Translations under genes and position numbers: made by a program
Sequence record: MF459647.1
DNA length: 64,000 nucleotides
Strand: one strand, 5' to 3'
Notes under the pieces: model-generated
The model's database searches: none
What the model was told of the DNA's origin: nothing
The model's input: the letters and a program-made list of their open reading frames with translations, nothing else
Part shown: piece after piece, positions 5,016 through 62,379 of the stretch
How the letters are laid out: each line of letters begins with the position of its first letter
Position numbering within the stretch: position 1 is the first letter of the stretch

Positions 5016-5041
5016 TCTTTTCATTTAAGGAGACATTCCAC

Positions 5042-5530: not shown

Positions 5531-5539
5531 GAGAACGTC

Positions 5540-39615: not shown

Positions 39616-40704
39616 AAACAACACTGCGCCTTCTAGTGGTGACACTAGTCGAAAAACACTCCCTAAAACGGGAAGAACTCCATTGGAGAGAATCCGTTAC
39701 TAAGTAATCCATTTCCATGCATACTTCTTTTTTAAAAAAGGAGGTAGTTATGGAAGCTGTGTGTTATATCCTCTCTTTTAAGAAAGAAGATAAAGTGAAG
39801 ACCTACGTTGGTCACACGGTTGAGTTTGAGAAACGTCTTGCTCGTCATTTACGAGAGCTAAAGCAAGGTATTCATCATAACAGTGAATTACAAGCTTTAT
39901 ATGACGATGGCTGGGAATTCGACAGCAGCAAACTCATTCCGGTTGGGAATAAGAAACTTGCTCATCAGTTAGAGCAGGAACACATTCTCGCCAACAAAGA
40001 TAATCCTGATTCAGTCAACATTGAGTGTGGTAACGACACCTTTACCAATAATCCTCGTAAAGAGGAAATAAAGGTAAAACTCGTTGCGCATCTTAAGAAC
40101 TTCATGGACAGTCTTTCTGATGAAGAAAGAAAAGAAGTGTATGGTCGTGTTGGCGAAATAAATGGGATGCACGGTCAATCTCACTCAGAAGAAACACGCA
40201 AATTAATCAGCGAGAAGGTTAAGGCTTATTACGAAGAACACGATGCTCCTGCTAAGGGCCGTAAACTTACAGATGAACAACGTGCGCTCCTTTCTATTCT
40301 AGCGTCTGGCCGTACTGGTGAAGCTAATCCGTTTTACGGAAAGACTCACAGCGACGAGACCAAGAAGAAAATAGCCGAGGCTAAAAAGGGTAATCTCCCA
40401 TCCAACACTAAATCAGTGTCGGTAAATGGGGTTATCTATAAGAGTATGTCAGAAGCTGCAAGAACGCTGGGTATTAATCCTACCGTGGCTCTTTGGCGTA
40501 TCAAAAGTCCCAACGTGAAGTATGCTGATTGGAAATGGGTTTAAATGTCCAACGACCAGAACGTGATTGTTCGTAGGGTTCAAGTGAACTCGAAATGGGA
40601 GAGCTTCTGCATAAGCAGAAGGTGATATGGTCTGATCTGCATGGTGACATGCAGCTGCAAGTAATGTTGCGGGGTGGGAGTAACGAACCCACCTGAACAT
40701 ATTG
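39616..40704 (+). mobile_element. Group I self-splicing intron (IA2-like), 1089 nt
   Basis: 5' exon ends in U, intron ends in G; IGS cactGcgc (39622-29) forms P1 with a U.G pair and P10 with exon 2 agtg; P2 and P9 have GUGA loops; P3 ctccc/gggag; P4 aacgg/ccgtt; P7 GACCA/UGGUC; P8 cttctgc/gcagaag; removal restores QLYQR|SADVFLG in frame. Confidence 0.93.
39750..40544 (+). CDS. Intron-encoded GIY-YIG homing endonuclease (I-TevI-like)
   Basis: CY...YVG...R...H...E...N catalytic domain; NUMOD3-type repeats HSEETRKLIS and HSDETKKKIA; C-terminal HTH VNGVIYKSMSEAARTLG; aaggagg SD before ATG 39750. Confidence 0.92.
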   Translation: MEAVCYILSFKKEDKVKTYVGHTVEFEKRLARHLRELKQGIHHNSELQALYDDGWEFDSSKLIPVGNKKLAHQLEQEHILANKDNPDSVNIECGNDTFTNNPRKEEIKVKLVAHLKNFMDSLSDEERKEVYGRVGEINGMHGQSHSEETRKLISEKVKAYYEEHDAPAKGRKLTDEQRALLSILASGRTGEANPFYGKTHSDETKKKIAEAKKGNLPSNTKSVSVNGVIYKSMSEAARTLGINPTVALWRIKSPNVKYADWKWV

Positions 40705-41001
40705 AGTGCTGACGTCTTCCTCGGCGTGCCGTTTAACATCGCCAGCTACGCGCTGCTGATTCACATGGTTGCTCAACAGGTTAACATGGTGCCTGAAGAG
40801 TTCGTGTGGACAGGCGGTGATGTGCATCTGTACTCTAACCACCTGGAACAGATTAAAGAACAGCTGACCCGTGAACCACGTCCGCTGCCAAAACTGGTTA
40901 TCAAACATAAGCCGGCCTCTATCTTTGAATATAACTTCATTGACTTTGAGCTGCAGGATTATGATTCACATCCGACCATCAAAGCACCGGTCGCGATTTA
41001 A
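40705..41001 (+). CDS. thyA: Thymidylate synthase, exon 2
   Basis: [15 protein letters not shown]...GDVHLYSNH...IKAPVAI. Confidence 0.95.
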
Positions 41002-47159: not shown

Positions 47160-47168
47160 GGTGTAATC

Positions 47169-47684
47169 ATGCGCTATTGGATTCGTCGTGACACGTTAAG
47201 TTATGAACTTAGCGAAGATGACATGTCGTTCATGGGCTATGTGGAAGTAACCAAACGTCCCGATGTCTATTCGGAAGTTTACTCGTGGTCCTTTGCAGAA
47301 GGCCGCTGGGTAGCTGACCGTGAAGCATTGCGTGTTGCTATTGCTCAGCGTCGTTTTGATGTTGAAACCGCCGGGGTGTATGTGGGTGAATACCGCATCG
47401 ACACCACTGACCGCGGTAAGTTGATGTTAATGATGGCGGCAAGCCGTGCAGAGTCTCTGCCGGAAGGCACGTTGGTGTCGTGGAAAGTCTCCAATGATTC
47501 CTACACCTCGTTCACCCCTGCTCAAATCATTGCATTAAAGAACGAAGTGTGTGACTACATCGGTCAGTGTTTTGAATACGAACGTTTGTTAGCGGACCGC
47601 ATTATCCGCCAGGATTTTGATGTTGCTGAAATCACCGTTGGGTGGCCAAGTAACGTCATTACTCTGCCTGGGGTAGCGGCGTAA
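47169..47684 (+). CDS. DUF4376 tail-fibre assembly chaperone-like protein
   Basis: IAQRRFDVETAGV...IDTTDRGK...WKVSND...CFEYE...GWP; lies between two fibre genes. Confidence 0.8.
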   Translation: MRYWIRRDTLSYELSEDDMSFMGYVEVTKRPDVYSEVYSWSFAEGRWVADREALRVAIAQRRFDVETAGVYVGEYRIDTTDRGKLMLMMAASRAESLPEGTLVSWKVSNDSYTSFTPAQIIALKNEVCDYIGQCFEYERLLADRIIRQDFDVAEITVGWPSNVITLPGVAA

Positions 47685-47739
47685 TTTGTTGTCCGGTTCT
47701 GTTGGGGGAGCCGGACAATTTCTCTTTATTGGTGATGGC

Positions 47740-50199
47740 ATGAAACCGATCAATGAATTGGATGTATTTGTACCAGAGGTTCCTCTCTTAGAAGAATCGG
47801 ATTTGGTAAAGGGCGGGGAACAAGGCCCGAGTAATGCTCAAGCACTGGCATTGGCGAGCCGTACCCATTTTCTCAATGAGCGTCGTAAAGAACTCGAAAC
47901 CGAACTCGACCGCATTGATACCGCACTCAGTGGTTTAGATGCCGATAAAGTCGGGGCTGATGCTAAAGGCACAGCAACCGGTTTGATTGATGCTCACGTA
48001 AAAGACGCAGACCCACACATTCAGTATTTAACCGATGCTCGTGGTAAACTGTTGTTTGTGGATAAAACCACCGCCAACAAACCGAACGGGTATCTGCAGT
48101 TAGATGCCAACGGGAAACTGCCGGCCGGCGTTGTAACCAGCTTATCGGCACGTTACGTTATTGTGGCTGATGAAACCGAACGACTGAAGTTAACAATCAC
48201 GAACGACCTTACCATTGCAGCGCAGCAATCTGACGATACCCTGTACTACTTAAATGCCGGGACTGATCCTTCTGTCAAAGGCAATTGGATTAAAGGTCAA
48301 TCGGCTACGGTATCGGGCGTCGTATCTTTCTTTGGTCGTACCGGGGTAATTACTGCTGAAAGCGGTGACTATACGGCTGACCAGATTAATGAAACGTTAA
48401 CGCGGTTATTTGTTTCCCCTCAAGAGAAACAGACCTGGAACCAGAAACAGGATAAGCTGGTTTCCGGTACCAACATTAAAACCTTTAAAGGACAGTCTTT
48501 GGTTGGGGCGGGCGACCTTTCATTCAACTATGCTGACTTTGGTGCAGCAGCTGAAATACACAAGCATGTGGCTTCGGATATCACTGACTTTAATGATAAG
48601 GTAGACGGGCGTGCTTCTTCTTTATTAAAGGCAGGCCAAAACATACAGCTCGTGGTTGATCCTACAACCAAAGCCGTTACCATTAATGCGGCACCACCTA
48701 ATGCGGCTTCATTGTTTGCTTCGGTTGACCGAATGGGTTCGGCTGCAAACCAGATGCACGTGATAAACTTCAACCAGGATATAACGTACAACCTGGAAGC
48801 GTATGCTTTGAAGTTAGAGAAGGGGTCGACTAACCAGGTGTATACCTTGGAAACGTTTGATCCAACTTCTGCACCGTTCTTTAACTCTACCCAATATCTG
48901 ACCTTTAACGGTGTTTTGGGTGTGGCGTATAACTGGACACCGACGCTGCGTCAAAACAAAACGCGTTATGAAATGGAATTCGATCCGAACGTTAATGCTT
49001 TATCACTGTTCTCTACAGCCGGTAAAAACATTATCCCGGTGATGGCAGGCAATGGTGGGATTAACGGTTATGTGCCGTTTGCATCTTCGGAGTACAGTGC
49101 GGACTATACAGCATATCGTGCGTTCTCCAACCTCCAGGCTGCTAATGGTGCATCAGACTGTTGGGCATCAGGTAAAGGCCAAGTTCCGTCTGCTGCTAAC
49201 CCACAATGGATAGGTATCTCTTTGCCTGCGGGCGTTAAGATAACAGCGTACAGTTTTGTGAACCGTAGTGCAGGTGCGGTATCCACACCGTCTAAATATA
49301 AACTCCAGGGCAGTAACGATAAAACCACCTGGGATGACATTGAAGCGGTACGCTCTAACACTAACGATGCAGCGGCGTTTGAGTTCTTCCATTCAGCGAG
49401 ACCTACCAAAGCCTATCAGCATTATCGTCTCTACATTACTGAACGTTATCCTAACAATCCCGACTATGACTTTGTCGTGGTTTGGCGTTTACGGTTGTAT
49501 GTAGAGAAACCGGTGGTGTTCCAGGGTGAGACCAGTGATGCTTTATACACACTGGACAGTAATAACGTATTGGTTCCGTTAACTGACATCTCTGACGCGG
49601 GTATTGAAGCACAGGGTATTTCGGTGGCTAAAAATATTCCACCGGCAAACCTGTTGGCTTATCCGTTGAAAAAGATTGTGGGACTGGAACCCTCTACCCT
49701 GAACGTCAAGCTTGTCCCGATGGAACAGATCGCCATCATGAAAGACCCGTTGGTGACGAAGCCGTTTAGTAAAATAAACGCCATGAACTACACCGCGGTC
49801 CTGTTGGAAAAGACCCGGTACGCTATCTCCCCTGACGGTGTTACCTTCTATACTTACAACGGCGGTACGTGGACGTCATTAGGGGCGTTGAAGAACGACC
49901 TGGCGTCAGCGAAGAAATTGGCGGCTCAAGGTATGATGAACGGCTTGGCAACAGGGACTATCATGACCTTGTACACCCAGCTGGGGATTAGATTCACGGC
50001 GTTCAGTTTGGCCTACGGGATTTTCCCAACGGTAGCCAACGAAGTTATCTCGGTCGACCAAACGTTGTTGAGTGTGGATTTCGCGGATACGTGGAAGAAA
50101 CAAACACCGGCTGAGGTAGAGATTCGTTACAGCTCCGGGAATATCTCCTTTAAAACGGTGGCAGCGGGAGACTACAAGCTAGTTTACCAAGTCGCCTAA
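47740..50199 (+). CDS. Second tail-fibre / receptor-binding protein with a discoidin domain
   Basis: Collinear paralog of 44769; YRAFSN...PQWIGISL...YKLQGSNDKTTW...YQHYRL; start placed at ATG 47740. Confidence 0.8.
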   Translation: MKPINELDVFVPEVPLLEESDLVKGGEQGPSNAQALALASRTHFLNERRKELETELDRIDTALSGLDADKVGADAKGTATGLIDAHVKDADPHIQYLTDARGKLLFVDKTTANKPNGYLQLDANGKLPAGVVTSLSARYVIVADETERLKLTITNDLTIAAQQSDDTLYYLNAGTDPSVKGNWIKGQSATVSGVVSFFGRTGVITAESGDYTADQINETLTRLFVSPQEKQTWNQKQDKLVSGTNIKTFKGQSLVGAGDLSFNYADFGAAAEIHKHVASDITDFNDKVDGRASSLLKAGQNIQLVVDPTTKAVTINAAPPNAASLFASVDRMGSAANQMHVINFNQDITYNLEAYALKLEKGSTNQVYTLETFDPTSAPFFNSTQYLTFNGVLGVAYNWTPTLRQNKTRYEMEFDPNVNALSLFSTAGKNIIPVMAGNGGINGYVPFASSEYSADYTAYRAFSNLQAANGASDCWASGKGQVPSAANPQWIGISLPAGVKITAYSFVNRSAGAVSTPSKYKLQGSNDKTTWDDIEAVRSNTNDAAAFEFFHSARPTKAYQHYRLYITERYPNNPDYDFVVVWRLRLYVEKPVVFQGETSDALYTLDSNNVLVPLTDISDAGIEAQGISVAKNIPPANLLAYPLKKIVGLEPSTLNVKLVPMEQIAIMKDPLVTKPFSKINAMNYTAVLLEKTRYAISPDGVTFYTYNGGTWTSLGALKNDLASAKKLAAQGMMNGLATGTIMTLYTQLGIRFTAFSLAYGIFPTVANEVISVDQTLLSVDFADTWKKQTPAEVEIRYSSGNISFKTVAAGDYKLVYQVA

Positions 50200-50221
50200 T
50201 TTTATGGTAGGTTCAATATTG

Positions 50222-50260
50222 CTCAGCCTCCCTTTCGGAGGCTGAGTACTTTCTATTTTT
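50222..50260 (+). terminator. Stem-loop
   Basis: ctcagcctcc/ggaggctgag followed by a T-rich tail. Confidence 0.65.
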
Positions 50261-50274
50261 ACAAGGCGATTCGT

Positions 50275-51144
50275 ATGGGCTTAAATCTTCGTTTTATGCC
50301 TTACACTGATGGGGATTCTGACGGGGTGGATATTTACCGAGCCACATCCAAGACCGGTGAGCGTCAGCTCATGAAGAGTCTGGCCGCTGGGATTCATGAG
50401 TTTAGCGACCACAGTGTGGAAGCCAATAAAGTGTATTGGTACTGGATACTGAACAAATCTGCTGCCAACGGAGACCGACTCAGCCAACCCATGAGTGCAC
50501 CAACGTTCATTGATTTGGGCCCCGGTCCGAAGAAACTGCTACGTGGGGATTGGGACTTCGGTTACCTGGGGTATGTCCCGGTTGCGGATATGTTCACCTA
50601 TGCTCAAGCACAGAGCGCGGCAGCCATTCAAGCAGCACCGGATGGCGGCACACTGAACGGATTCCATAAGTGTGTAGTACGGGGACGGATTATTTACTTT
50701 GGGGATGTCATTTATTCCCGCACGGTGAACCGGACCACGGTAGGGAATGCCCTGTTAGCGCAGGACAGCAATCCGTTAACCACAGCACCTCGTCTGGCGG
50801 TAAATGATTATGAGTACATCGTACGGTGCCCTTACTCTTCTACTTTATCTACTACTGCGGTTGTGGGTACGGGTGACGGGTTGGATGGCACCATCAAACT
50901 CAGTGAAGTCGGCATGCTGGCGTCGCTTATTCTGGATGCAGATACTGCTGGTAAGCTTAGTGGGAATAAGCTGAGTGATCTCGCTAATAATGGGATATCA
51001 ACCTTTTATTTCTCTAATACGTACGCTGCTAACAATGTTGTGAACGTGTTCAGTCTGGTTGCTGATGCGTCTATCGGACCTGCCAGTGACATGACAGGGA
51101 ACCGTCCATTCTGGCCTGTCTTCGAGTTAGTGCTACACGAATAA
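50275..51144 (+). CDS. Virion paralog: FN3-like N-terminus, GPGP..LLRGDW.FG, ...WPVFEL
   Basis: Motifs shared with 53837, 54780, 58325 and 59300. Confidence 0.75.
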   Translation: MGLNLRFMPYTDGDSDGVDIYRATSKTGERQLMKSLAAGIHEFSDHSVEANKVYWYWILNKSAANGDRLSQPMSAPTFIDLGPGPKKLLRGDWDFGYLGYVPVADMFTYAQAQSAAAIQAAPDGGTLNGFHKCVVRGRIIYFGDVIYSRTVNRTTVGNALLAQDSNPLTTAPRLAVNDYEYIVRCPYSSTLSTTAVVGTGDGLDGTIKLSEVGMLASLILDADTAGKLSGNKLSDLANNGISTFYFSNTYAANNVVNVFSLVADASIGPASDMTGNRPFWPVFELVLHE

Positions 51145-51170
51145 GGCTGTTAAACATACAGGTGGATTAA

Positions 51171-52922
51171 ATGAGTTTACCGAGTCGGCAACTCTTTTTA
51201 GACCGTTTTATGGAAGTAAACCGTATACGGTATAAAAACGATCCTGAAGTTTTGGACCGGTTGAACAAGCTCACTGTAAAAGACATTGTCTTTGAGGGGC
51301 TGACCGAAGACCCAAACCGACCTGGGGGGATGATTTCCAACTTCTCGGTACCTGCCAAAGCCATTGAAGCCTATGCGCAACGATGGATTCCGGTAGACAT
51401 CAAGAGCAAACACATCATCAATCCAGCAAACGTTACCAATGTCCCGACATTGAATGACGTCATTGCTGCGCAAGCCCGCGGGTTGTTTACCTATCAGGAT
51501 AATGGGTCAACCAAACTAGCGATCGTTATGGCCTTCCGTCAAGATATCCCTGTGGAGAACTTGGCGAAAGAAGTTACCAAAACCTTAAACCGCACAACCA
51601 GTTACGTCATTAAAGACGGTGACCTGCAAATAAACTTCAACGACTCCACGGATGATTATAGATTATTTGATGTTCGTAATGAGACCATCAGCGGTGAAGT
51701 AGCAGTGATTCGTCTCCCCAGTAACCTGTTAAAAGGAACCTGGTGGTTAGGCTATCTGGGTGAGTGGACACCTGATGAAGTTATCCGTCCCAGTATTCTG
51801 GCCGAAATGGTTGGGGTGCCGAATGGGATTAACCCAGACGTGGAATGGTTAAAGTTCTCAGTAGAGGGCCGCATCATTTATGTTGCCAAACGACCCATTA
51901 GCAAAATGGTCAGTTATGGTAGCCTGTCGGGGTTAAACCTGGTAGACGGTAACCGTATTGTTGATATCGATCATGAACAGTACAAGATTCGACTGTTAAC
52001 CGCAGAAGACTCTGACACGTCCGACTGGAACCGGGTGATGTACCGTGTTTCTGAAGATGACCCCACAGGAACTTTCTGGGAAGAGTTCACCGACCAAGAG
52101 TTAGGTATCAATAACTCTGATAACGGTGGGATTACCCTGTCTCGTTCTGAAAGTGGTGGGTCGGTCTACGGTCGTGGTCGTTACAGCATCACGTCTCTGC
52201 AATCTGTTATTAAAACCGCTTCTTCTCCGGCAACGGGCTGGCGTCCTGTTCTGGAACTTATCGGTGTTGACAATATTGAATACGCACCGACAGCACACTT
52301 AACCGGCGTGATTCCTGTTGAACCTGAGATGTCAGGCGGAGCATCGGGTGACTTTGTTTATGCCGTAGGTCCTGTGGCTTCACGCATGACGGAACACACC
52401 GACTTTAACGGTTACCGTTATGATGATGTCGTCTTTGCGGTGCAGGGTGTCGAGGTCTATCAGAACCAGTTAGTGCCGGCAACGGAAATTGTTGACTACA
52501 GCTACGTCGCGGTCTTCAACGTTATGTCGGTAGAGGTTAAACCTGACACGGTCGTGAAACCCACGGAAATTACAGGGTCGAGAATTCAGGACGTTGTAAT
52601 TGTACCAAATACCGTTAAGTCAACGGTTGACCCTGACTGGCTGGAGTCTGACAATAACACCGCCGTGTCGAACGGAATCATTTCAGCCGTTGCAAAACGC
52701 GGTGTTATCACTTTGTTACCAACTTCGGGTTACGCTAATACCGCTGACTCAAACAGCGTGGTTGGGGCCGTAACGAAGAAAGGTAGCTATGTCATTGCCG
52801 CTGATTTTGTAATTGAAGAGATTACGTTTAACGGCATCGACAACTGGATTCCAGAAACAGACTACGGCGATCTGTTTGAAGAAGAAGTGTATAATCCTGA
52901 CACGACATTTATGTCTTTCTAA
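51171..52922 (+). CDS. Long virion paralog (QLFLDRF domain + WRPVLEL domain + PETDYGDL tail); cassette 1 gene A
   Basis: Collinear with 55752. Confidence 0.75.
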   Translation: MSLPSRQLFLDRFMEVNRIRYKNDPEVLDRLNKLTVKDIVFEGLTEDPNRPGGMISNFSVPAKAIEAYAQRWIPVDIKSKHIINPANVTNVPTLNDVIAAQARGLFTYQDNGSTKLAIVMAFRQDIPVENLAKEVTKTLNRTTSYVIKDGDLQINFNDSTDDYRLFDVRNETISGEVAVIRLPSNLLKGTWWLGYLGEWTPDEVIRPSILAEMVGVPNGINPDVEWLKFSVEGRIIYVAKRPISKMVSYGSLSGLNLVDGNRIVDIDHEQYKIRLLTAEDSDTSDWNRVMYRVSEDDPTGTFWEEFTDQELGINNSDNGGITLSRSESGGSVYGRGRYSITSLQSVIKTASSPATGWRPVLELIGVDNIEYAPTAHLTGVIPVEPEMSGGASGDFVYAVGPVASRMTEHTDFNGYRYDDVVFAVQGVEVYQNQLVPATEIVDYSYVAVFNVMSVEVKPDTVVKPTEITGSRIQDVVIVPNTVKSTVDPDWLESDNNTAVSNGIISAVAKRGVITLLPTSGYANTADSNSVVGAVTKKGSYVIAADFVIEEITFNGIDNWIPETDYGDLFEEEVYNPDTTFMSF

Positions 52923-52935
52923 AAGAGAGTAAATC

Positions 52936-53832
52936 ATGGGCATTCGTCTCGAAATTACTAACAAAAACACCGTACCGGTAACGATTAACGTTTACCGTGG
53001 TGATCAAGAACTGGACCGTGCTAATCTCCCGCCGGCAATTGGTCAGATTGCCAACACCACCGATAACCCGGCTATCTTTAATGATAACACGGTGGTGCAA
53101 GGCAAAACGTATTTCTACGTGTTTGAAACCGTGGGACCGAAAGATCGTGCCTACACCCGTAACTTCAAAATCCAGGCGCTGGAAACCCGCGGTCCGGGTG
53201 ATAACGATCTCAAAATCGGCAACCGCAACCTGGGGTATTACGGCAACCTGTCAGCCGGTGCGATTACTGATGCCGCGTCTCTGTGCTCTGCGATCGGTTT
53301 GACCGGCCACACCGTTAACTCCTTTGCGACCTGGTACAAATTTGCGCGTAAAGGCAAAGTGCTGTTTGTGCCGAACGCACACATTGCTCGCGGTGGGATG
53401 TCGTTCAACAAACTGAAGACGCTCGGTCTGGTGGACGGCAAAACCATCACCATCGGTGCCTTTAAATATAAAGTGCGTCTGATGAGCGGTTGGGATGACA
53501 GCAAAGCGCTGGATGCGAACATGGTGGTAGGTACTAACTACAGCATGGAAGATTACCTGGACAACTCTTGCGAATTCAACGACCTGGTATATCCGCTGGT
53601 GAAGTGGACACCTAACGGTCAGCATTTGCCAGGTCTGTTCCAGCAGACAGTTACGGCGGTAACGTCTAACACGCTGCCGCTGTGCAAGGATAACGACGGT
53701 ACAAAATTTGTGCGCCGCACTATGGCGGCTGATACCCGTGCCGCTGTTTCCACCATTGCTATCGATAATACACCAGACGCTGTAAACGCTTCTTACAGCC
53801 TGCTGCCGGTTCTGGAACTCATCGAGGGGTAA
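52936..53832 (+). CDS. Virion paralog (FN3-like, ETRGPG, ...LPVLELIEG); cassette 1 gene B
   Basis: Collinear with 57432 (WYKFARKGKVLFVP vs WVKFARKGKVFFVP; CEFNDLVYPL in both). Confidence 0.8.
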   Translation: MGIRLEITNKNTVPVTINVYRGDQELDRANLPPAIGQIANTTDNPAIFNDNTVVQGKTYFYVFETVGPKDRAYTRNFKIQALETRGPGDNDLKIGNRNLGYYGNLSAGAITDAASLCSAIGLTGHTVNSFATWYKFARKGKVLFVPNAHIARGGMSFNKLKTLGLVDGKTITIGAFKYKVRLMSGWDDSKALDANMVVGTNYSMEDYLDNSCEFNDLVYPLVKWTPNGQHLPGLFQQTVTAVTSNTLPLCKDNDGTKFVRRTMAADTRAAVSTIAIDNTPDAVNASYSLLPVLELIEG

Positions 53833-53836
53833 TCTC

Positions 53837-54769
53837 ATGTCATTAGTGGTGCAATGGGAAGATATCCCAGATGCCGCTGGTTACGAAATCTATCGGTCTA
53901 AGACGAAGTTCTCTTTGAGCACGTTGCCGACCGATAAGGTTAGTGTGCCGGCTGGTGCAACGGAATACGAATACACCGACGTGGATCGCCAAACCGTTTA
54001 CTGGTTTGCTATTCGTACCCTCGACGCTAACGGAGCAGGAACCTTTGGTCAAGTCTTCCCGTTAGGTTATTTCCCGGACACCGGTCCTGGTCCTTCTACA
54101 TTGTTACGTGGGGACTGGGCGTTTGGTTTCTTTGGGGAAGTTAGCCCGAGTCTGGTAGGGACATCGGACGAAGTGTATGCTCAACTGACGCAGACAACGG
54201 CGGATAACCCCATCAAGCCTACGGTAAAAGATTTTGTTTACCTGAAATGCATTGTGAACGGGAAGATTGTCTTTATTCCTTCGTCTCCGTTTGCAACCTA
54301 TGCGGTGATGGGAACGACGGCGCATTACATCTCAATAGGTGCAACGGGCGATGCTGGGTTAGATGACAACACCGCACCGGTTATCAAACTCAAGGGACGG
54401 GATTACCGTCACCGCTTACCAAGAGCAAGCAACAGCAAATCCACAGCGGGAACTGTTAATCTGGATGTGGTATCAGACGATGTGTTAATGTCTGAGGTCG
54501 GTATGTTAGCGGCGCTCCTGTTATCGACCGCTGAAACAGACGTGTCGAAGAACCCAGACAACCGTAATGCCGCACCGTTGCATTATCGTCTCGGTGACTA
54601 TACCGATCTTGCCAACGTCATTACGCTTCATCGTTTCGCTAACTACGGTGGCGACAACAACTCGCTGTACAGTTACGTTGTTACGCCAAGCACGGGCGCT
54701 ATTGCAAACAAGGTCTGGTATTACACCGACCCGAAAGCCTACCTGCCGGTATTAGAACTGCTCTTCTAA
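53837..54769 (+). CDS. Virion paralog (FN3-like, DTGPGP, ...LPVLELLF); cassette 1 gene C
   Basis: Collinear with 58325. Confidence 0.8.
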   Translation: MSLVVQWEDIPDAAGYEIYRSKTKFSLSTLPTDKVSVPAGATEYEYTDVDRQTVYWFAIRTLDANGAGTFGQVFPLGYFPDTGPGPSTLLRGDWAFGFFGEVSPSLVGTSDEVYAQLTQTTADNPIKPTVKDFVYLKCIVNGKIVFIPSSPFATYAVMGTTAHYISIGATGDAGLDDNTAPVIKLKGRDYRHRLPRASNSKSTAGTVNLDVVSDDVLMSEVGMLAALLLSTAETDVSKNPDNRNAAPLHYRLGDYTDLANVITLHRFANYGGDNNSLYSYVVTPSTGAIANKVWYYTDPKAYLPVLELLF

Positions 54770-54779
54770 GGAGAACATA

Positions 54780-55640
54780 ATGGGTGTGAAGATTCAGTGG
54801 ATTGACCCCAATATCGATCCATTAGATACAGTAGAAATCTGGCGTTCTCCCACAAAAGCCGGTGCGCCGGTTAAGATTGGGAGTGTGGCTGGCGACGTGC
54901 GTGAGTATCAGGACGATACAGCTGAACGAAACAAAGTTAGTTGGTACACACTGACTTCAGTGCGTGGTCAAGGCAAAGCCATCAGTACACCGTTTCCGGT
55001 AGGTAACTATCCTGATACGGGTCCAGGCCCTAAAACCATCATGCGTGGTACGTGGGAGTTTGGTGTGTTCGGTGAAGTGGATGCTAACCTGCTTCCGGGT
55101 TTCAGTGAAATCCAGGAGAAGGTGGGTATCGCTCCGAACAATTCCGTGGTCCGATTCTACAAATGGATTGTTAACGGCCGCATCATCTTTATTCCATGGG
55201 GACCGTACAGCAGTGCGTTTGGTACTACTATCACTGCTGCCGGTATCATGGTGCCTCAGGGTAAAACGAATGAGGCGGGTTTGGTGATTGATCGTGAGGG
55301 GTACGGCTACAACATTCGTCCTCCTTACGCGACCAACAACTTCACCAGTGAACTAACGACCATTGCTGACGGTGGGGATGAAACCCTGAAGCTTTCAGAG
55401 TTGGCTGCAATTATGACCAGTCTGGTTGGGATGGACACGAAGTTAATGTACGGTGACATGAAGTGGGGTGATATTTCTCCTGCTGCAGCGGGCGGTAACT
55501 ATTACCTGACCAACACCTACATTAACGCCAACAACTCCACCCTGGTAGCAAACATCGCAGCGTCACCGGCGTTAGTGAGATCAGGTAGTACATCTTCTGC
55601 TCGTGGCTTGTGGCCCGTGTACGAACTGCTGTTAACATAA
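54780..55640 (+). CDS. Virion paralog (FN3-like, DTGPGP, ...WPVYELLLT); cassette 1 gene D
   Basis: Collinear with 59300. Confidence 0.8.
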   Translation: MGVKIQWIDPNIDPLDTVEIWRSPTKAGAPVKIGSVAGDVREYQDDTAERNKVSWYTLTSVRGQGKAISTPFPVGNYPDTGPGPKTIMRGTWEFGVFGEVDANLLPGFSEIQEKVGIAPNNSVVRFYKWIVNGRIIFIPWGPYSSAFGTTITAAGIMVPQGKTNEAGLVIDREGYGYNIRPPYATNNFTSELTTIADGGDETLKLSELAAIMTSLVGMDTKLMYGDMKWGDISPAAAGGNYYLTNTYINANNSTLVANIAASPALVRSGSTSSARGLWPVYELLLT

Positions 55641-55648
55641 TGGGGACA

Positions 55649-55672
55649 CCTCCTCCCTTCACTGGGAGGAGG
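55649..55672 (+). terminator. Stem-loop with TTCACT loop at the cassette junction
   Basis: cctcctccc-ttcact-gggaggagg. Confidence 0.6.
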
Positions 55673-55694
55673 GTCTTATATAACTGATGGCAAA

Positions 55695-55702
55695 ATGTTA
55701 TG
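55695..55702 (+). promoter_or_regulatory. Late-type TATG promoter motif
   Basis: atgtTATG upstream of cassette 2. Confidence 0.45.
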
Positions 55703-55751
55703 TTCCTGATTTCTTTATCCCTTATTATCCGTAAACGGAGAGGTACATGAC

Positions 55752-57416
55752 GTGAGTATAAACAGGCGTCAGCTCTTCCTGGACAGGTTCCTTGCCTATA
55801 ACAGGTCGCGCTATAAAGATAACCCTGACGCACTCAAACGACTGGACAGACTCACCTTCGAGGACATGGTTTTCGATGGCATTGCTATTGATACCAGCAA
55901 AGCCGGTGAGCTTCGTCGTCGCGTCGCTAACTTCCATGCCGATGCGCAAATGATGGAAGGTGTTGATCAACGCTGGACGTGCACCAGTCTGTTGCATCGC
56001 AAAGTCATCCCCACTGAAAACTATATCAACAGCACGCCGTTTGCCTCTCTGGAAGATTTTAAGAAAGTTAACCTGCAAGGTGTGTATCAGTATTTAGATG
56101 ACGGTGTTCCGGTATTGGGTGTGGTACTTGCTACCGACTCGTCTAAAACCGAAGACGTTACCCCGGAGTTGATTACACTCCTGAACACGGTATCTCGTTA
56201 CCAACTGTTAACCACCGAGCTGTCAATTGAAGCTGCTGACCGTGACCACTTCCCAATGCACTTCACCTACATGGGTGATACCATTGTGGGTCGCATTACT
56301 GTCATCCGTCAAGCTGCAGACCGACCTGCGGTAGGTAACGAAATTCTTGGTTATTACGGTGAGTTCCCGTCCGACTACTTAATCTCCAGCGGTGTATTGG
56401 CTGAGATGTTAGGGTTGGCTGGTGATAAACTGATTACCGGTGCAGAGACAGTGCCGTGGTTGAAGTTTGCTTACTTCGGTAAACTCCTGCATGTGTCAAA
56501 GCGTCCTATCAGTAAAAACATGACGTGGACGGCGCTGAACGACATGGGGTTAGTTGACGGCTCCCGTATTATTCAGTTAGGTAATAAGCGTTATCGGGTA
56601 CGTTTATTACACGGAGCAGCAAATGACTTCGGTAATGAATGGAACGACCTCATCTATCGCGTTCATTATCAAGATCCAACTAATACGTTCTGGGAGCGAT
56701 TCACAGACGAAGAGATGGGGCTTGGTTGGGATGCAGTTACCAACAAATGGTATCGTGATGGGTCCATTGCCTTTACCCAGGATGCAGTCGATGCTACTAC
56801 GGTGGTAACACGTGGTGGCGGGCAGGATGGTGCGTCACTGACCGTGACCGGTACCGTAGCGAAAACCACGACCAGCAAGTATTACGGTTGGCGACCGGTG
56901 TTGGAATACATTGGAACAAGCGGAATAGATACACCGTACATTGCGGATATCAGTTCTCCACTGTCGTTGGATTTCTCATCTGAAATCAACACCGACTTTA
57001 CTGGGGTCTTGCGTCCGTTTGGGTTTGACGTGGAAATGGTGCCGGATGCGAAGATTGTACCTAGCGCTGTTAACAACGTTACCCTGTTTGCGGTGAAGTT
57101 GGATTCTGCTTCGCTGGTAGGTAGTGCAGAAGCTCCGGTTGTCACCAAAATCGAAAACAACTCGGTGAAATTCCCACGTGATGTCAGACTGGATAAAATG
57201 GTCCCGTTAACGTGTGACATCTATTCACTGGAAGAGCCGGACGATACAGTTAGACTGGCTACGGTCGACATGGGTGACATCACTCCACGTCAAATTCGAC
57301 CAACCATTCCATTAGCGGCACAGGACCTCGGTGACATTGCAACCAAACAAGTCAACCCAGATGCTGATGGGAAATACAACGGTCTGTTTACCCATAACGG
57401 CACGCTACATTATTAA
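55752..57416 (+). CDS. Long virion paralog; cassette 2 gene A
   Basis: RRQLFLDRFLAYNRSRYK; WLKFAYFGKLLHVSKRPIS; GWRPVLEY. Confidence 0.75.
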   Translation: MSINRRQLFLDRFLAYNRSRYKDNPDALKRLDRLTFEDMVFDGIAIDTSKAGELRRRVANFHADAQMMEGVDQRWTCTSLLHRKVIPTENYINSTPFASLEDFKKVNLQGVYQYLDDGVPVLGVVLATDSSKTEDVTPELITLLNTVSRYQLLTTELSIEAADRDHFPMHFTYMGDTIVGRITVIRQAADRPAVGNEILGYYGEFPSDYLISSGVLAEMLGLAGDKLITGAETVPWLKFAYFGKLLHVSKRPISKNMTWTALNDMGLVDGSRIIQLGNKRYRVRLLHGAANDFGNEWNDLIYRVHYQDPTNTFWERFTDEEMGLGWDAVTNKWYRDGSIAFTQDAVDATTVVTRGGGQDGASLTVTGTVAKTTTSKYYGWRPVLEYIGTSGIDTPYIADISSPLSLDFSSEINTDFTGVLRPFGFDVEMVPDAKIVPSAVNNVTLFAVKLDSASLVGSAEAPVVTKIENNSVKFPRDVRLDKMVPLTCDIYSLEEPDDTVRLATVDMGDITPRQIRPTIPLAAQDLGDIATKQVNPDADGKYNGLFTHNGTLHY

Positions 57417-57431
57417 TTCATAGGAACAGTC

Positions 57432-58322
57432 ATGGCTATTCTGATTAAATTCAACAACCCCAATGCTGATGACATTACCCTGAATGTCTATCGAGCAGAT
57501 GCTGAAATGGACCGCAGCAAACTTCCGGCTCCGCTGGCTACCTTAACCGGTCGCCCAACTGAGTTCCTGGACAAAACTGCTGTGCAGGGCAAAACCTACT
57601 TCTATATCTTCGAAGCTATCGGTAACAACGACCGTGACATCTCTCGCAACATTAAACTGATTGCAGCAGAAACACGCGGTCCAGGCAACAACATTCTGAA
57701 AGAAGGCACTCGTGAGCTAGGCCACTATGACGTGATGCCGGCGTCTGACCTGCTGGATTACCAACAGCTGTTTGCTAAGATGGGTAACCCTGCTGGCTTT
57801 ACAGCGAGTAACTTCACGAACTGGGTTAAGTTTGCACGCAAAGGGAAAGTCTTCTTTGTGCCTTCATCACCTATTGGGGTAGCTATGCCTCAGGCAATGA
57901 AAGATGCCGGCTTTATGGGTGACGGTAAGATTATTGAACAGAACGGGTTCAAATACCGTGTTCGTTTAGCACGCGGTTGCAGTGAAACCGATGCCGAAGC
58001 GACGACGTTCCTGGCGGATAAAGTCGCGTTGACTAACTACGACATGGATACATTTGATATCAGTTGTGAATTCAACGATCTGGTGTACCCGCTGTTAAAC
58101 GTTACGCCGTTAAAACAACGGTTGTCAAATAAACTCAATGGCAGCATCAAAACGATAACAGGTAGTCGCTTTGTTCCTGTAAAGGAAGCATTGGCTGATT
58201 CGTCTCCGGTGTCCCGTACCTATTACGACGCAACCGATCGTACCCAGGCGACGTGTCTTCGTGCTATTGCTCTTAACGTGGCTTGTGCGTTCTGGCCGGT
58301 ATTAGAACTGATTGAGGGCTAA
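57432..58322 (+). CDS. Virion paralog; cassette 2 gene B
   Basis: ETRGPG; FWPVLELIEG. Confidence 0.8.
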   Translation: MAILIKFNNPNADDITLNVYRADAEMDRSKLPAPLATLTGRPTEFLDKTAVQGKTYFYIFEAIGNNDRDISRNIKLIAAETRGPGNNILKEGTRELGHYDVMPASDLLDYQQLFAKMGNPAGFTASNFTNWVKFARKGKVFFVPSSPIGVAMPQAMKDAGFMGDGKIIEQNGFKYRVRLARGCSETDAEATTFLADKVALTNYDMDTFDISCEFNDLVYPLLNVTPLKQRLSNKLNGSIKTITGSRFVPVKEALADSSPVSRTYYDATDRTQATCLRAIALNVACAFWPVLELIEG

Positions 58323-58324
58323 TT

Positions 58325-59290
58325 ATGGCAGTCATTATTAGTTGGAAGCCCATAGCCAACGCCGACAAGATTCGCGTGTATCAATCAACTACTCCGTTCA
58401 CGTTTGCAGACATTGCCGGGAACCCCGCTATTACCATGGTAGAAGTGCCCGGGACTGATGTTAGCAAAGCTGTGACCATCCCACGTAATAACGTGCACTG
58501 GTTCGCGTTGTCAGCGGTTGATGCAGACGGTCTGGAGTTGTTCTGTGAAGTGTTCCCAATGGGTAACTTCCCTAACACCGGACCTGGGCCGGATACCATT
58601 CTTCGTGGTAACTGGGATTTCGGTTTGTTTGGTGAGCTTTCTACCGAACAGCTGTTTACTAATGCTGAACTAGGTGCAGGAATTGTTGCAGCAGGTGCGA
58701 CCGTTGATAACGTTACCAGCGGCAACCGTATCACCAAGTGGTTTAAGTGTATCGTTAACGGGAAGATTCTGTTTATCCCAAATAACTACGTTTATCTCAT
58801 GCCTGAAGGTGGCGATAAACCGACCCTGTTAGCCCAGCGTAAGTTGAGCATGACCGCCGGGTTTCCGGGTGCAGCTGTTCTAAGCAAGAACGGCAATGAT
58901 TTCATGTATCGTTTACCGTCCTATACCCGAAGTGTGCCTGCTGGGCAAATCACGCAGCCAGCCTCTGACGATATCTTGAGTTCTGAAGCCGGGATGATTG
59001 CGGCATTAGAAACAGGGGCATTGAAAATTGGGCGAAACAGCGTGGGGGTTGGGCGCACTCCGTATAACGTGTGGGATAACCTCGGTGATATGGTCTTGGG
59101 TTCAACTGGTAACACCCCGCTGGCAACGGCGAACTATTATTCAGTAAGTTCGAACATGCAATGGGGTGTGCACTGCATGATTCCTCGTGATGGGTCGTAC
59201 ATGACCTACGGGATTCAGCAGTGGTTCCAGAACAGTAGCGTCTCCTACGGTAACTTCTACGTCATGCCGATTCTTGAATTGGTCTTCTAA
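58325..59290 (+). CDS. Virion paralog; cassette 2 gene C
   Basis: NTGPGPDTILRGNWDFG; VMPILELVF. Confidence 0.8.
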   Translation: MAVIISWKPIANADKIRVYQSTTPFTFADIAGNPAITMVEVPGTDVSKAVTIPRNNVHWFALSAVDADGLELFCEVFPMGNFPNTGPGPDTILRGNWDFGLFGELSTEQLFTNAELGAGIVAAGATVDNVTSGNRITKWFKCIVNGKILFIPNNYVYLMPEGGDKPTLLAQRKLSMTAGFPGAAVLSKNGNDFMYRLPSYTRSVPAGQITQPASDDILSSEAGMIAALETGALKIGRNSVGVGRTPYNVWDNLGDMVLGSTGNTPLATANYYSVSSNMQWGVHCMIPRDGSYMTYGIQQWFQNSSVSYGNFYVMPILELVF

Positions 59291-59299
59291 GGATATCCA

Positions 59300-60154
59300 A
59301 TGAGCATTACTATTAACTTTCGTAACCGCAACATTGATGCCCTGGATGAGATTCGTATTTACCGTACGGAGAACCGGGGTGTTGCACCAACCCTGATTGC
59401 GACCATTACCAACGACAAGGTCTTTTACAAGGACACAACAGCCCAGTACAACCAACTGTACTTCTATCAGACCGGTGCGGTGTATCAAGGTATCGAAAAC
59501 CGCAGCGAACTGTTCCCGGCTATTGCGTTCCGTAATAATGACAACGGTCCGGGTCCACAAAAGCTCATTCGCGGTAACTTTGAGTTTGGGCTGTTTGGTC
59601 CGGTGGACATGAATGACCTGCCGTCGTTTGATGCAGTGTCGGTATCAGCAGGTGTTACCCGTAACGTTACGGGTAACCCAACGGTGGCGCTGAAGTGGTG
59701 TATTAATGGCAAAATCATTTACACCTTTAATGCTGCGTTCCACACAGGCATCTCCAAAGACAACCTGAAGAAGCTGTTCATTGCTGCAAACAAAGAGTCG
59801 GACTTCTTCAGTATCGACTTAGCGGGGAAAACCTTTAAAGTACGTCCGCCGTTTGCCACTACACTGCGTGGGGCCATCGTAGGGACCGGGGAAACCTATC
59901 CCCTGACGTGGTCAACGGATGTTCAGCAAAGTGAAGCAGGCGCGATTATGCGCAGCTATCTGGGGTCTGCTGTTATCAAGGCCGGCGATCGGATGTATGA
60001 CCTGGCTCCGTTACCGGCGGGTGGCTTCTGGACTAACACCTACTATGACCTGAACACATACTACATGTTCTATCTGGACGGCAACACAAGCGCCTATCGT
60101 GCATCCTCTGGAACGGGTCCTTTCTATCCGGTGTATGAACTGATGCTTGATTAA
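59300..60154 (+). CDS. Virion paralog; cassette 2 gene D
   Basis: GPGPQKLIRGNFEFG; FYPVYELMLD. Confidence 0.8.
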   Translation: MSITINFRNRNIDALDEIRIYRTENRGVAPTLIATITNDKVFYKDTTAQYNQLYFYQTGAVYQGIENRSELFPAIAFRNNDNGPGPQKLIRGNFEFGLFGPVDMNDLPSFDAVSVSAGVTRNVTGNPTVALKWCINGKIIYTFNAAFHTGISKDNLKKLFIAANKESDFFSIDLAGKTFKVRPPFATTLRGAIVGTGETYPLTWSTDVQQSEAGAIMRSYLGSAVIKAGDRMYDLAPLPAGGFWTNTYYDLNTYYMFYLDGNTSAYRASSGTGPFYPVYELMLD

Positions 60155-60169
60155 TAAACTGGAGACTTA

Positions 60170-60754
60170 ATGAAAATTCCAAACATGCAGTTGTTTTTGG
60201 ACAGGTTCATTAGCGTTAACAGAGTCAGGTATCGGCAACAGCCGAGCGTTTTGGCTATCCTCGACACATTGACATTAAAGAACGTTATCTTCTCGAAGGT
60301 GCGTTCTGATATTGATGCGTTCGGGGAACTGGTGCGTACAGTGGACATGTACGTGCCAAAAGTCATGAAGGCCATGGACCAAAGTTGGTTACCTGCCTAC
60401 TACACCACTCCGCGTATCACCAACATGGTGACTACTGATGTGCAGGATGAAAACGATCTCATCACGCTCGAGGTACCGGGGTTCTACTTTTACAAGGACC
60501 GTTACAGTAAAGTGCAGGGATGCGTGGTGGTGCCTGCCCAGATTAATTCGGAAGACATTGCGGATTACGTCAAGGACATGGTAAAGAATGCAAATGCTTA
60601 CCAAATCAATGACGACCAAATCTCGGTAGCCGGTAACTTCTCTGAGGTTATTGTAGACACCCCCGCCATCTACCAACGACTCAAGCTTGTCCTTTCTCTG
60701 CGTGATTTCTCATTTAATATCCCCGACACGGACTACGGGGATTTGGGGGTCTGA
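60170..60754 (+). CDS. Virion protein: QLFLDRF domain plus IPDTDYGDL
   Basis: N- and C-terminal motifs shared with 51171. Confidence 0.75.
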   Translation: MKIPNMQLFLDRFISVNRVRYRQQPSVLAILDTLTLKNVIFSKVRSDIDAFGELVRTVDMYVPKVMKAMDQSWLPAYYTTPRITNMVTTDVQDENDLITLEVPGFYFYKDRYSKVQGCVVVPAQINSEDIADYVKDMVKNANAYQINDDQISVAGNFSEVIVDTPAIYQRLKLVLSLRDFSFNIPDTDYGDLGV

Positions 60755-60794
60755 ATTTTATGGACCGATTATTATAACACCGAGGTAATTTATT

Positions 60795-61430
60795 ATGGGA
60801 ATGCTTGACCAACGTCAGCTATTTCTGGATAAGTTCGTTGCGTATAACAAACAACGTTATGCCTCCGAACCTAACAAAGTTGCGGCGTTCGATAACTTAT
60901 CGTTGAGCGACGTCCAGTTCGGTACCATCACCAAGACGGAAGATAACGGCGTTTACAAACGCTCTTACGACCACGTTAACTCAACTACTCGTAACTTCAC
61001 GTCTGACCCGCAGCGTTTCAATGCAGCTAACCTGGCCAGCCAGTGGGTAACCACAGCCAGCCAGATGGCGGACATTGCCGATGTGCGTGCTGCACCGCCG
61101 GGCATCTATTTCTACCTGGATGCGCTGAACAACAATGCTCGTACCCTGTGCGTGGTATATCCGTACGACTTCGATACCAGTGACGATGTCGCGTTCAAAG
61201 ATCAAATCTTCACCATGATCAACGGCGCGTGTAAATACGCACTGGATAAATCGGTCTTCGATATCCTGCCGTGGACTCAGTCTGACCCGACGGACAAAAT
61301 GACTTACGTTCAAGACGAAGTCATCGCGGGTTGGGTACTGACCATTAAAGGTACTCAGGATACGCTGGTCATTCCGGATACCGACTACGGCGATCTGATT
61401 AACGAACAAAACGGTGGCGTTGCGCCGTAA
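60795..61430 (+). CDS. Virion protein: QLFLDKF domain plus IPDTDYGDL
   Basis: Motifs as above; strong codon bias; TATG at 60759. Confidence 0.78.
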   Translation: MGMLDQRQLFLDKFVAYNKQRYASEPNKVAAFDNLSLSDVQFGTITKTEDNGVYKRSYDHVNSTTRNFTSDPQRFNAANLASQWVTTASQMADIADVRAAPPGIYFYLDALNNNARTLCVVYPYDFDTSDDVAFKDQIFTMINGACKYALDKSVFDILPWTQSDPTDKMTYVQDEVIAGWVLTIKGTQDTLVIPDTDYGDLINEQNGGVAP

Positions 61431-61448
61431 TAACGTTTGTTACTGACT

Positions 61449-61480
61449 AGGTTAACCCCGCGATGGGGTTAACCTTTTCT
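61449..61480 (+). terminator. Intrinsic terminator
   Basis: aggttaacccc/ggggttaacct followed by a T-run. Confidence 0.75.
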
Positions 61481-61503
61481 CTTTTCTGTTAAGGACATTT
61501 GAT

Positions 61504-62379
61504 ATGGACGCAAACCTGCAACTCTTCCTTGACAAGTTCATTGAGGTGAATAAGCAGAAGTATGCTGATGAACCTGAAGTGCTTGCTCTTCTGGAAGGAT
61601 TGACACTGGCGGATGTTGTTTTCGACAGCATCGAAATCGATGAGAGTTTAGGCGAAGGCGGTCGTATTGCCAGCTTCCATTCTCCTTCCCGTAAATTCAA
61701 TGCCCCGCAACAACAGTGGCTTTGTTCAACTCTCCAGGGTAAGAACGTCGTTACCTTTACTGATGCAAAAGTGTTTGATGACAAAGCATCGGTAAAAGCA
61801 CTGACGGCACCAGGCGTCTACCTGCACAAAGCAGGCGACGCCACAGCGGTATCGGTATTGACAGCTGAAGACGTTGCCGATGTTGACACTGCAACGCAAA
61901 ACATCATTGCTGCTTTGACCGGCGCGGCGAATTATGAACTGAAGGTTGAAGACCTGCTGATTCCAACCTTTACCCTCGGAACAGATTTCGAAGGTCTGGT
62001 CAGTTCACACTGCATCGAAGACACGTTCAACGTGTACTTTATCCCGAAAGCGACAGCTCCGTCTGAACCGGGTGACGGTGGTGAAACTGATCCAGGTACT
62101 GGCGGCGGTGAAACCGGTGGTGAAGGTGAAGGTGGCGAACCTGAAGTGGATCCTAACGAACCGGTAATCACGCCGGAAATGGAAGCCGAAGATAAAGCCC
62201 TGGCCGACCCAACTGCCGGTGGTATTTATTCTGACGTAGGTGACAAAGGGTTTGGTGTATTAACTGTACCGCGTGAAATCTCTGAAGAGACAGCCAACAT
62301 CGCTACCATCACTGGTATGACGTTTGGTCTGGTAGGCGCTGGTTCTCTGCAGGTGGAGACTTTAAATGAAAACGCGTAA
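61504..62379 (+). CDS. Virion protein: QLFLDKF domain plus a Gly/Glu/Pro-rich linker
   Basis: LQLFLDKFIEVNKQKY; PSEPGDGGETDPGTGGGETGGEGEGGEPE. Confidence 0.75.
   Translation: MDANLQLFLDKFIEVNKQKYADEPEVLALLEGLTLADVVFDSIEIDESLGEGGRIASFHSPSRKFNAPQQQWLCSTLQGKNVVTFTDAKVFDDKASVKALTAPGVYLHKAGDATAVSVLTAEDVADVDTATQNIIAALTGAANYELKVEDLLIPTFTLGTDFEGLVSSHCIEDTFNVYFIPKATAPSEPGDGGETDPGTGGGETGGEGEGGEPEVDPNEPVITPEMEAEDKALADPTAGGIYSDVGDKGFGVLTVPREISEETANIATITGMTFGLVGAGSLQVETLNENA

Follow-up and report, generated by a model that had tools for sequence, protein, structure and literature searches.

Phages of the phiKZ-like (chimalli) type carry very large families of paralogous virion proteins, with 20 or more members in SPN3US, whose function has been left open in the literature. 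Among these, the 20 members of paralog family B, which comprises SPN3US gp138-154 and others (PMC5694885; Thomas et al. 2016, 2017), were found in tailless SPN3US particles and were assigned no putative function by Thomas et al. (PMC5694885). A broad survey of jumbo phages found no 'FGS' C-type-lectin-fold domains in them (PMC7824862). Domains of the C-type-lectin (CLec) fold are described as targets of diversity-generating retroelements (DGRs), as in the tentaclins (PMC10743442) and in DUF6273, which in the literature is a CLec-like DGR target domain with the variable region (VR) at its C-terminus. Here we analyzed a window of 64,000 nucleotides from Erwinia phage vB_EamM_Joad (MF459647.1; window position = record position − 124,000), in which positions 50275-60154 (record 174275-184154, 100% identity) are filled by nine co-oriented open reading frames, JOAD_198-JOAD_206 (gp198-gp206), all labelled 'putative virion structural protein' in the annotation of the record. 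Our results indicate that gp198-gp206 probably form a panel of binding modules that is fixed in the germline and displayed on the virion. Their CLec fold class and their homology to a DGR-diversified domain are very likely, and a binding role of the heads is somewhat favored.

The nine genes are united by the closing motif of one domain. A search for P[VI][LFY]E[LY] in the six-frame translation of the whole window returned nine matches, one in each of gp198-gp206 and none elsewhere, against 0.35 +/- 0.57 matches in shuffled windows. The motif is the C-terminal end of seven of the nine proteins; the other two, gp199 and gp203, have it at the close of an internal domain, at about residue 361 and residue 383, respectively. 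Residues G91, G96, K132 (W.K), G137 (GK/GR), R184 (Y..R), P281, and E284 (gp198 numbering) are invariant in the alignment of the nine domains (A1). The once-per-gene motif and these invariant positions show that the shared PVLEL-type ending and upstream W.K/GK and Y..R strands, on which the original prediction was built from the sequence alone, are real and far beyond chance. The prediction had also described a hypervariable pre-terminal segment, and the ~30 residues preceding the last strand are indeed the least alignable part among the nine paralogs, being enriched in S, Y, A, and T, with no Glu and few Lys. As for the proposed architecture of an FN3 stalk bearing a CLec head, it holds for the seven short proteins (284-321 amino acids, aa), whose beta-sandwich matches solved FN3 domains, and fails for gp199 (583 aa) and gp203 (554 aa), in which a different N-terminal domain of ~185 residues precedes the head.

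All nine genes lie on the plus strand and were sorted into four types. The first, gp198 (type D, 289 aa; 50275-51144), has an FN3-like stalk (50275-50517), a GPGP hinge, and a CLec-like head (50518-51141) that ends in WPVFEL. It is followed by gp199 (type L; 51171-52922), composed of an N-domain that starts with QLFLDRF (51171-51716), a CLec-like head ending in WRPVLEL (51717-52271), and a tail (52272-52919) that ends in an IPETDYGDL motif and is probably disordered, by analogy with the modelled gp203. The next three are gp200 (type B, 298 aa; 52936-53832), with FN3 at 52936-53190 and the head at 53191-53829, and gp201 (type C, 310 aa; 53837-54769), both ending in LPVLEL, and gp202 (type D, 286 aa; 54780-55640), ending in WPVYEL. 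The second long gene, gp203 (type L, GTG start; 55752-57416), encodes an N-domain (55752-56315), a CLec-fold head ending in WRPVLEY (56316-56921), and a disordered tail (56922-57413), and is followed by gp204 (type B, 296 aa; 57432-58322; end WPVLEL), gp205 (type C, 321 aa; 58325-59290; end MPILEL), and gp206 (type D, 284 aa; 59300-60154; end YPVYEL), which, like gp201 and gp202, consist of FN3 and head. In PHROGs all nine proteins fall into phrog_1062, and the long ones, gp199 included, into phrog_21620, a 'virion structural protein' group.

A word search with gp200 retrieved 80 relatives, many of them from contigs of about 210-280 kb, and tblastn found the family in 116 phage records, nearly all phiKZ-like, from Erwinia, Salmonella, Pseudomonas, Ralstonia, and Cronobacter hosts. 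In BFVD there were 36 matches at E <= 1e-3, including the long RisingSun protein and an EL 'Kelch-like' protein, and every named match was a chimallivirus virion protein. Pfam returned nothing relevant for the nine proteins, for 84 family members, for the N-domains and tails, or for remote relatives, and PDB sequence-profile searches matched the FN3 domain only, with no match for the head profile.

The fold of the head was addressed with a structural model of gp203, in which the N-domain (residues 1-190) is poorly predicted, the head (200-389) has a predicted local distance difference test (pLDDT) score of 72-92, and the tail (390-554) is predicted to be disordered, with values below 50. When this model was compared by VIA-align with 48,161 PDB representatives, all 50 rows returned were CLec/FGE-type folds, aligned over residues 201-388 and thus across the whole domain. 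They include (with the two VIA-align values of each match) PvdO (5hha; 8.1, 144), the Treponema DGR variable protein TvpA (2y3c; 7.9, 144), the C-terminal domain of Legionella Lcl (8q4e; 7.5, 116), residues 34-312 of the ThomasA IgA peptidase (9qa6; 7.4, 142), PorK (9mzu; 7.1, 140), CarF (5aoh; 7.1, 138), the C-terminal domain of Bdellovibrio Bd2740 (8oks; 6.8, 107), EgtB (6o6l; 6.7, 120), Mtd (1yu0; 6.6, 121), and TaqVP (5vf4; 5.8, 140). The Foldseek ranking for the same model opens with the same families, and ESM Atlas independently pointed to clusters of DUF6273, the name given to the N-terminal domain of ThomasA (residues 31-322) by the authors of that structure (PMC12402451). The CLec fold that had been anticipated from the sequence, with Mtd and TvpA among its expected relatives, is therefore borne out by the structure search.

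The resemblance to DGR targets is not restricted to the fold. A tblastn search with the gp203 head against all phage records (2.3 Gb) reached, at E 5e-5, the start of the 'Hoc-like head decoration protein' of Faecalibacterium phage Mushu (FP_Mushu; MG711460), a tentaclin and DGR variable protein whose gene (4019-5740 of the stretch analysed) lies directly 3' of the Avd and reverse transcriptase (RT) genes of that phage. The gp203 head and the Mushu protein are 33% identical across 106 residues (BLASTP), and hhalign aligned the profile of all nine paralog types and their orthologs (A3) with the Mushu N-domain at a probability of 96% (E 4e-9). In a relaxed run, the alignment extended end to end over 161 columns and reached the RPVLE closing strand, which reads GFRPVLE in the Mushu domain and GWRPVLE in the L-type heads of Joad. 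The template repeat (TR) and VR of Mushu (2409-2502 and 4463-4556 of the stretch analysed) show 11 differences, 11/11 of them at TR adenines, and the VR corresponds to residues 149-180, immediately before and including GFRP. A search started from the Mushu domain gave a list filled by thousands of near-identical DGR variants, which left no room for a reciprocal match to jumbo phages. The protein collection, clustered at 90% identity, has 2,935 clusters of the Mushu-type target, of which the best 120 are 90-96% identical over the first 190 residues of the query. In 117 Mushu-type variants the mean entropy was 1.30 bits in VR columns versus 0.037 elsewhere. Since the Mushu VR sits in the pre-terminal segment of a homologous domain, the hypervariable segment of the Joad heads is the positional equivalent of a real VR, and the description of the nine domains as DGR-target-like is supported by sequence homology as well. 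We also observed that variation among the 117 alignable Mushu-type proteins lies almost wholly inside the VR, at ~151-176, a clear DGR output in natural populations.

Retroelement parts themselves were not found in Joad, as the original prediction had noted for the window. A search for RVT_1 gave no match in the complete genomes of Joad (E <= 10) and RisingSun (E <= 1), with matches in the controls, and no TR/VR-like repeat was found in the 64-kb window, while the FP_Mushu positive control showed one. The sole direct repeat in the window is a 46-nt coding segment, K(C/W)IVNG(K/R)I.FIP, at 54245-54290 (gp201), 55161-55206 (gp202), and 58745-58790 (gp205). The RisingSun paper reported one significant DNA motif, restricted to the five C- and D-type genes of the array, and read it as a sign of co-regulation; it is probably the conserved coding segment of the paralogs and no regulatory site. 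It could be argued that the nine genes are cryptic DGR targets, still hypermutated by an RT from the host or from another part of the phage genome, because their domains are homologous to a real DGR target and because codons of the NNY form make up 67% of the pre-terminal segments versus 56% of the rest of the heads (Fisher p = 0.001). However, neither complete phage genome encodes an RT, no template repeat was found, and all nine pre-terminal segments together carry a single non-synonymous change between Joad and RisingSun, while Mushu-type variants differ almost only there, which leaves this explanation close to refuted. The NNY excess and the composition of the segment may be those of ordinary binding loops or a fossil of adenine mutagenesis, the latter with low probability.

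The variation that does exist in the array is of another kind. The RisingSun counterpart is 99.6% identical, with 44 of 9,880 positions differing, 38 of them synonymous and 6 non-synonymous, so that variation confined to the VR, as expected of a DGR among near-identical genomes, was not found between these two phages. The differences are concentrated in gp198 (18) and gp206 (24), which hold 42 of the 44, nearly all synonymous; the seven genes between them are near-identical, and the 3.8 kb downstream of the array contain 265 differences. Divergence this patchy suggests that related phages have recombined. The nine genes, their order, and, nearly, their lengths recur in three more distant relatives, at 45-90% identity. 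One of the three is contig AAHGNI010000005.1 (232,710 bp, a jumbo-phage size) of assembly GCA_007186295.1, labelled Salmonella enterica; it is syntenic with the Joad locus and encodes a gp200 that is 87% identical, so that a Risingsun-like phage either accompanied a Salmonella isolate or infects it. Among the orthologs of the distant relatives, the ratio of non-synonymous to synonymous rates (omega) outside the pre-terminal segment is 0.04-0.23, and the non-synonymous rate (dN) of the 30 pre-terminal codons is 2-5 times that of the rest in gp200, gp201, gp202, and gp204, with gp205 intermediate. The segment thus behaves as a fast-evolving surface in some paralogs, without DGR-like or general diversifying change.

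The original prediction had suggested a correspondence with the large virion paralog families of phiKZ-related phages, and this was confirmed at the level of profiles. Profile A2 detected SPN3US gp145-153 at E 1e-60 to 3e-23 and phiKZ gp83 at E 6e-17, the SPN3US gene numbering having been checked in JN641803, and homology to members of family B is therefore detectable. The published family also has gp138-144, gp83, gp161, and gp237; because SPN3US gp138-144 are matched by the DUF7941 model (PF25613) and not by the Joad head profile, the Joad array corresponds, as far as sequence profiles can tell, to only part of family B, namely gp145-153. DUF7941, which has 17 matches in SPN3US, covers gp138-144 in full and also the first 153 residues of gp145, gp148, and gp151, just before their heads. 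In phiKZ the family has a single member, gp83 (4348-5862 of the stretch analysed, minus strand), whose head spans residues ~20-225 and ends in GWRPVV, and is followed by YYYGG/YFYGG repeats that are Kelch-like in look. This protein is annotated as a 'structural head protein' and is unplaced in the 2026 phiKZ structural atlas. Its annotation, the presence of family B in tailless particles, and the flagging of the abundant gp141 and gp160 as possible ejection proteins ('Head ejection?') by Thomas et al. would all suit internal head proteins that are injected and act in the host. We consider such a role quite improbable for the Joad proteins, given that gp141 and gp160 belong to the DUF7941-only branch and not to the CLec-head branch, and that modules of the FN3 and lectin-fold kinds are typically found in extracellular proteins. 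Cleavage by the SPN3US prohead protease has been described for gp53, gp54, gp81, and gp245, and the available part of that description names no family B member.

The L-type N-domain of Joad occupies the same position as the DUF7941 module of SPN3US and also occurs in small head-less paralogs. Its identification as DUF7941 was dropped, since hhalign between the Joad N-domain and SPN3US DUF7941 gave only 0.3% and RisingSun has no PF25613 match at E <= 1. It defines a second paralog family, with a domain of ~185 aa that starts with QLFLDRF and is found in gp199, gp203, gp207, gp208, and gp209. The last three (60170-60754, 60795-61430, and 61504-62379, plus strand; span 60170-62379) have only this N-domain in common with the array. 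A conserved (I/V)P(E/D)TDYGDL end, in the form IPDTDYGDL in gp207 and gp208, is present in gp199, gp207, and gp208 and kept in three relatives; it looks like a docking peptide, and the family may form a head-to-tail system like that of DUF7941. The post-head tail of the long proteins has ~165-216 aa in Joad and, by a rough estimate from protein lengths, ~110-135 aa in SPN3US; that this would amount to ~55-65 aa of tail per short protein, or one docking segment each, is pure conjecture.

A maximum likelihood tree of 46 head domains gave clades for each of types B, C, and D (support >= 97) and for the L heads of the Joad lineage. The splits within the pairs gp199/203, gp200/204, and gp201/205 and within the trio gp198/202/206 are older than the divergence of the four Risingsun-like phages, which, together with the clades, resolves the array into one D gene followed by two L-B-C-D cassettes. 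In SPN3US, gp146/149/152 form the sister group of type B and gp147/150/153 that of C+D, the array of this phage being a long-short-short cassette repeated three times, with the same cassette logic as in Joad and two short genes per cassette instead of three. By the sequence tree, an ancestral long-plus-short cassette existed before these phage lineages separated, and each lineage multiplied it on its own. The idea that gene amplification generated the repertoire holds insofar as a four-gene cassette was duplicated; the amplification in Joad is ancient and stable, not ongoing. We also considered, as a doubtful joint proposal, that the PVLEL heads descend, together with those of the Mushu-type tentaclins, from an ancestor diversified by a DGR, whose one-gene hypermutation was swapped by jumbo phages for a fixed germline array; the NNY excess, the absence of Glu, and the richness in S, Y, T, and A would then be the fossil of adenine mutagenesis, and the L-B-C-D cassette would be one multi-headed unit on the disordered tail of the L protein.

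The germline-encoded panel that we favor would work as follows. Each protein contains one CLec-fold domain of ~200 residues, of the FGE/'FGS' subclass to which DGR variable proteins belong, running from the W.K..GK.(L/I)F(V/I)P hairpin to the final (G)(W/F/L/Y)(R)PVLEL strand. The 25-30 residues before this strand form the exposed beta-hairpin/loop surface that binds ligands in this fold class and that is mutated by a retroelement in the homologous FP_Mushu protein. The diversity of the Joad surfaces comes not from a retroelement but from the old tandem duplication of a four-gene cassette, made of an L gene (N-domain, head, and disordered tail) and the B, C, and D genes (FN3 stalk, GPGP hinge, and head), with every copy retained under purifying selection. 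The heads would bind host-surface or environmental ligands, probably glycans, and so favor reversible adsorption, while the FN3 and N-domains may anchor them to the particle. Their location could be the capsid surface, in analogy with Hoc and the tentaclins and in agreement with the SPN3US head data, or baseplate filaments of the kind proposed for phage Goslar. A preprint on that phage (10.64898/2026.04.21.720040) describes a DUF7941 protein that forms filaments and proposes a baseplate-anchored 'fiber cloud' carrying carbohydrate-binding domains; the words lectin, fibronectin, and FN3 are absent from it. The 'fiber cloud' proteins and the Joad array have in common that both are proposed accessories of host recognition. 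Regarding expression, liquid chromatography-tandem mass spectrometry has been applied to RisingSun as a crude lysate, and the proteins it detected include gp196, gp200, and gp204, the orthologs of Joad gp198, gp202, and gp206, all three of type D, as well as the orthologs of gp208 and gp209.

Several results weigh against a panel of displayed CLec binders. The RisingSun sample, being a crude lysate, shows expression and not virion incorporation, and the location data conflict, with tailless SPN3US particles pointing to the head and the Goslar proposal to baseplate filaments. On the side of the fold, Foldseek gave no match at E <= 1e-3 with either the gp200 or the gp203 model, and for the gp200 model the lists of both Foldseek and VIA-align were filled by FN3 matches only; the fold class of the short-type heads follows from their sequence homology to the L-type head. 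The alignment of the head with nd4-type DUF6273 (63 viral loci) scored 0.1% in hhalign, no better than a reversed control. The Mushu N-domain itself scored 0.3% in that comparison and its head, like the Joad heads, has no match to the Pfam DUF6273 model; the Joad and Mushu heads are a separate sequence family of the same fold. Neither the FGE-sulfatase (PF03781) nor the DUF6273 (PF19789) model matched anything in the whole Joad record at E <= 10. The first of these absences also tells against FGE/EgtB-like enzymes, a function that the structural matches to PvdO, EgtB, SenA, and FGE near the top of the list could bring to mind. Across 36 domain sequences (A3) only G, G, K, G, P, R, E, and E are invariant or nearly so, with no conserved Cys pair or His triad, which makes FGE- or EgtB-type catalysis unlikely, and nine divergent stalked copies are unlike an enzyme; we hold an enzymatic role to be very improbable.

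Conservation of the pre-terminal segment in close relatives, which the original prediction had named as counter-evidence to itself, was found in part, and this too is a point against the panel: the segment is essentially unchanged between Joad and RisingSun, and in gp198, gp199, gp203, and gp206 it evolves no faster than the rest, the faster change in distant relatives being seen in four of the nine genes, so that the objection was half escaped. These data would fit purely architectural virion parts, in which the CLec-like domain is a building block for protein-protein contacts, as in PorK or PvdO-like scaffolds, and the paralogs occupy distinct positions. Strict one-to-one orthologs with gene order and lengths kept in four phages, strongly purifying selection (as in the Joad/RisingSun substitution counts), conservation of the segment in four of nine genes, and family B members in tailless SPN3US heads are all compatible with that idea. 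Nevertheless, an FN3 stalk followed by a hinge and a terminal globular head is an arrangement typical of displayed proteins, the closest relative by sequence is a binding domain diversified by a DGR, the VR-equivalent segment is the faster part in gp200, gp201, gp202, and gp204, and its composition, free of Glu and rich in S, Y, T, and A, resembles that of binding loops. We therefore regard a purely architectural function as rather unlikely, and a fixed panel of displayed binders as the probable one.

The surroundings of the array are also of interest. Cassette 1 (gp199-202) and cassette 2 (gp203-206) are separated by 111 nt, within which lies a G+C-rich hairpin (55649-55672, plus strand), and similar hairpins are found at 50220-50248 and 61449-61475; all come from a consensus scan only, in which the count of terminator-like hairpins was no higher than in shuffles. 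Directly upstream of the array, gp195-gp197 (44769-50199) include two ~800-aa proteins that combine discoidin (F5/8 type C) domains with tail-fibre-like N-termini and, between them, a DUF4376 'tail fiber' protein. The region of ~18 kb as a whole therefore looks like one host-recognition module. Farther upstream (38758-41001; record 162758-165001), thymidylate synthase is annotated as two pieces, gp188 and gp190, around the GIY-YIG homing endonuclease gp189, an intron-like arrangement.

The PVLEL heads suggest a surface-binding role for a large and so far unexplained family of giant-phage particle proteins. Placing one branch of this family in the CLec fold, with a sequence link to a real DGR target, gives it a concrete and testable role as a panel of ligand binders, and the Joad heads correct the statement that jumbo phages are devoid of 'FGS' domains. 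In addition, the nine genes are candidate determinants of adsorption and host range for biocontrol phages of Erwinia amylovora.

Compared with known systems, the array resembles T4 Hoc and other Ig/FN3-type capsid adhesins, non-essential accessories of weak adhesion, in having a beta-sandwich stalk and a distal binding surface; unlike Joad, T4 Hoc is a single gene with no lectin-fold head, and capsid attachment of the Joad proteins is only a proposal. Mtd (1YU0), TvpA (2Y3C), and TaqVP (5VF4) have no detectable sequence similarity to the Joad heads, which are encoded without a retroelement, and Mtd forms a trimer at the tip of the tail fibre and has additional N-terminal domains. With the tentaclins (PMC10743442), the Joad proteins share a CLec head homologous to a described member, the FP_Mushu N-domain, and not the domain order. 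In Mushu the head is N-terminal and followed by Ig domains (Big_9), whereas in Joad the FN3 or N-domain comes first and the head after it or, in the long proteins, internally. Mushu has Avd, RT, adenine-mismatched TR/VR, and thousands of variants, in contrast with Joad, which has none of these and nine fixed paralogs. In both the Mushu protein and the short Joad proteins, a head is joined to an Ig/FN3-type beta-sandwich stalk and the variable segment lies in the same place, and one binding scaffold appears to have gained its diversity by two routes, through a retroelement in a small gut phage and through the duplication of a cassette in a giant one.

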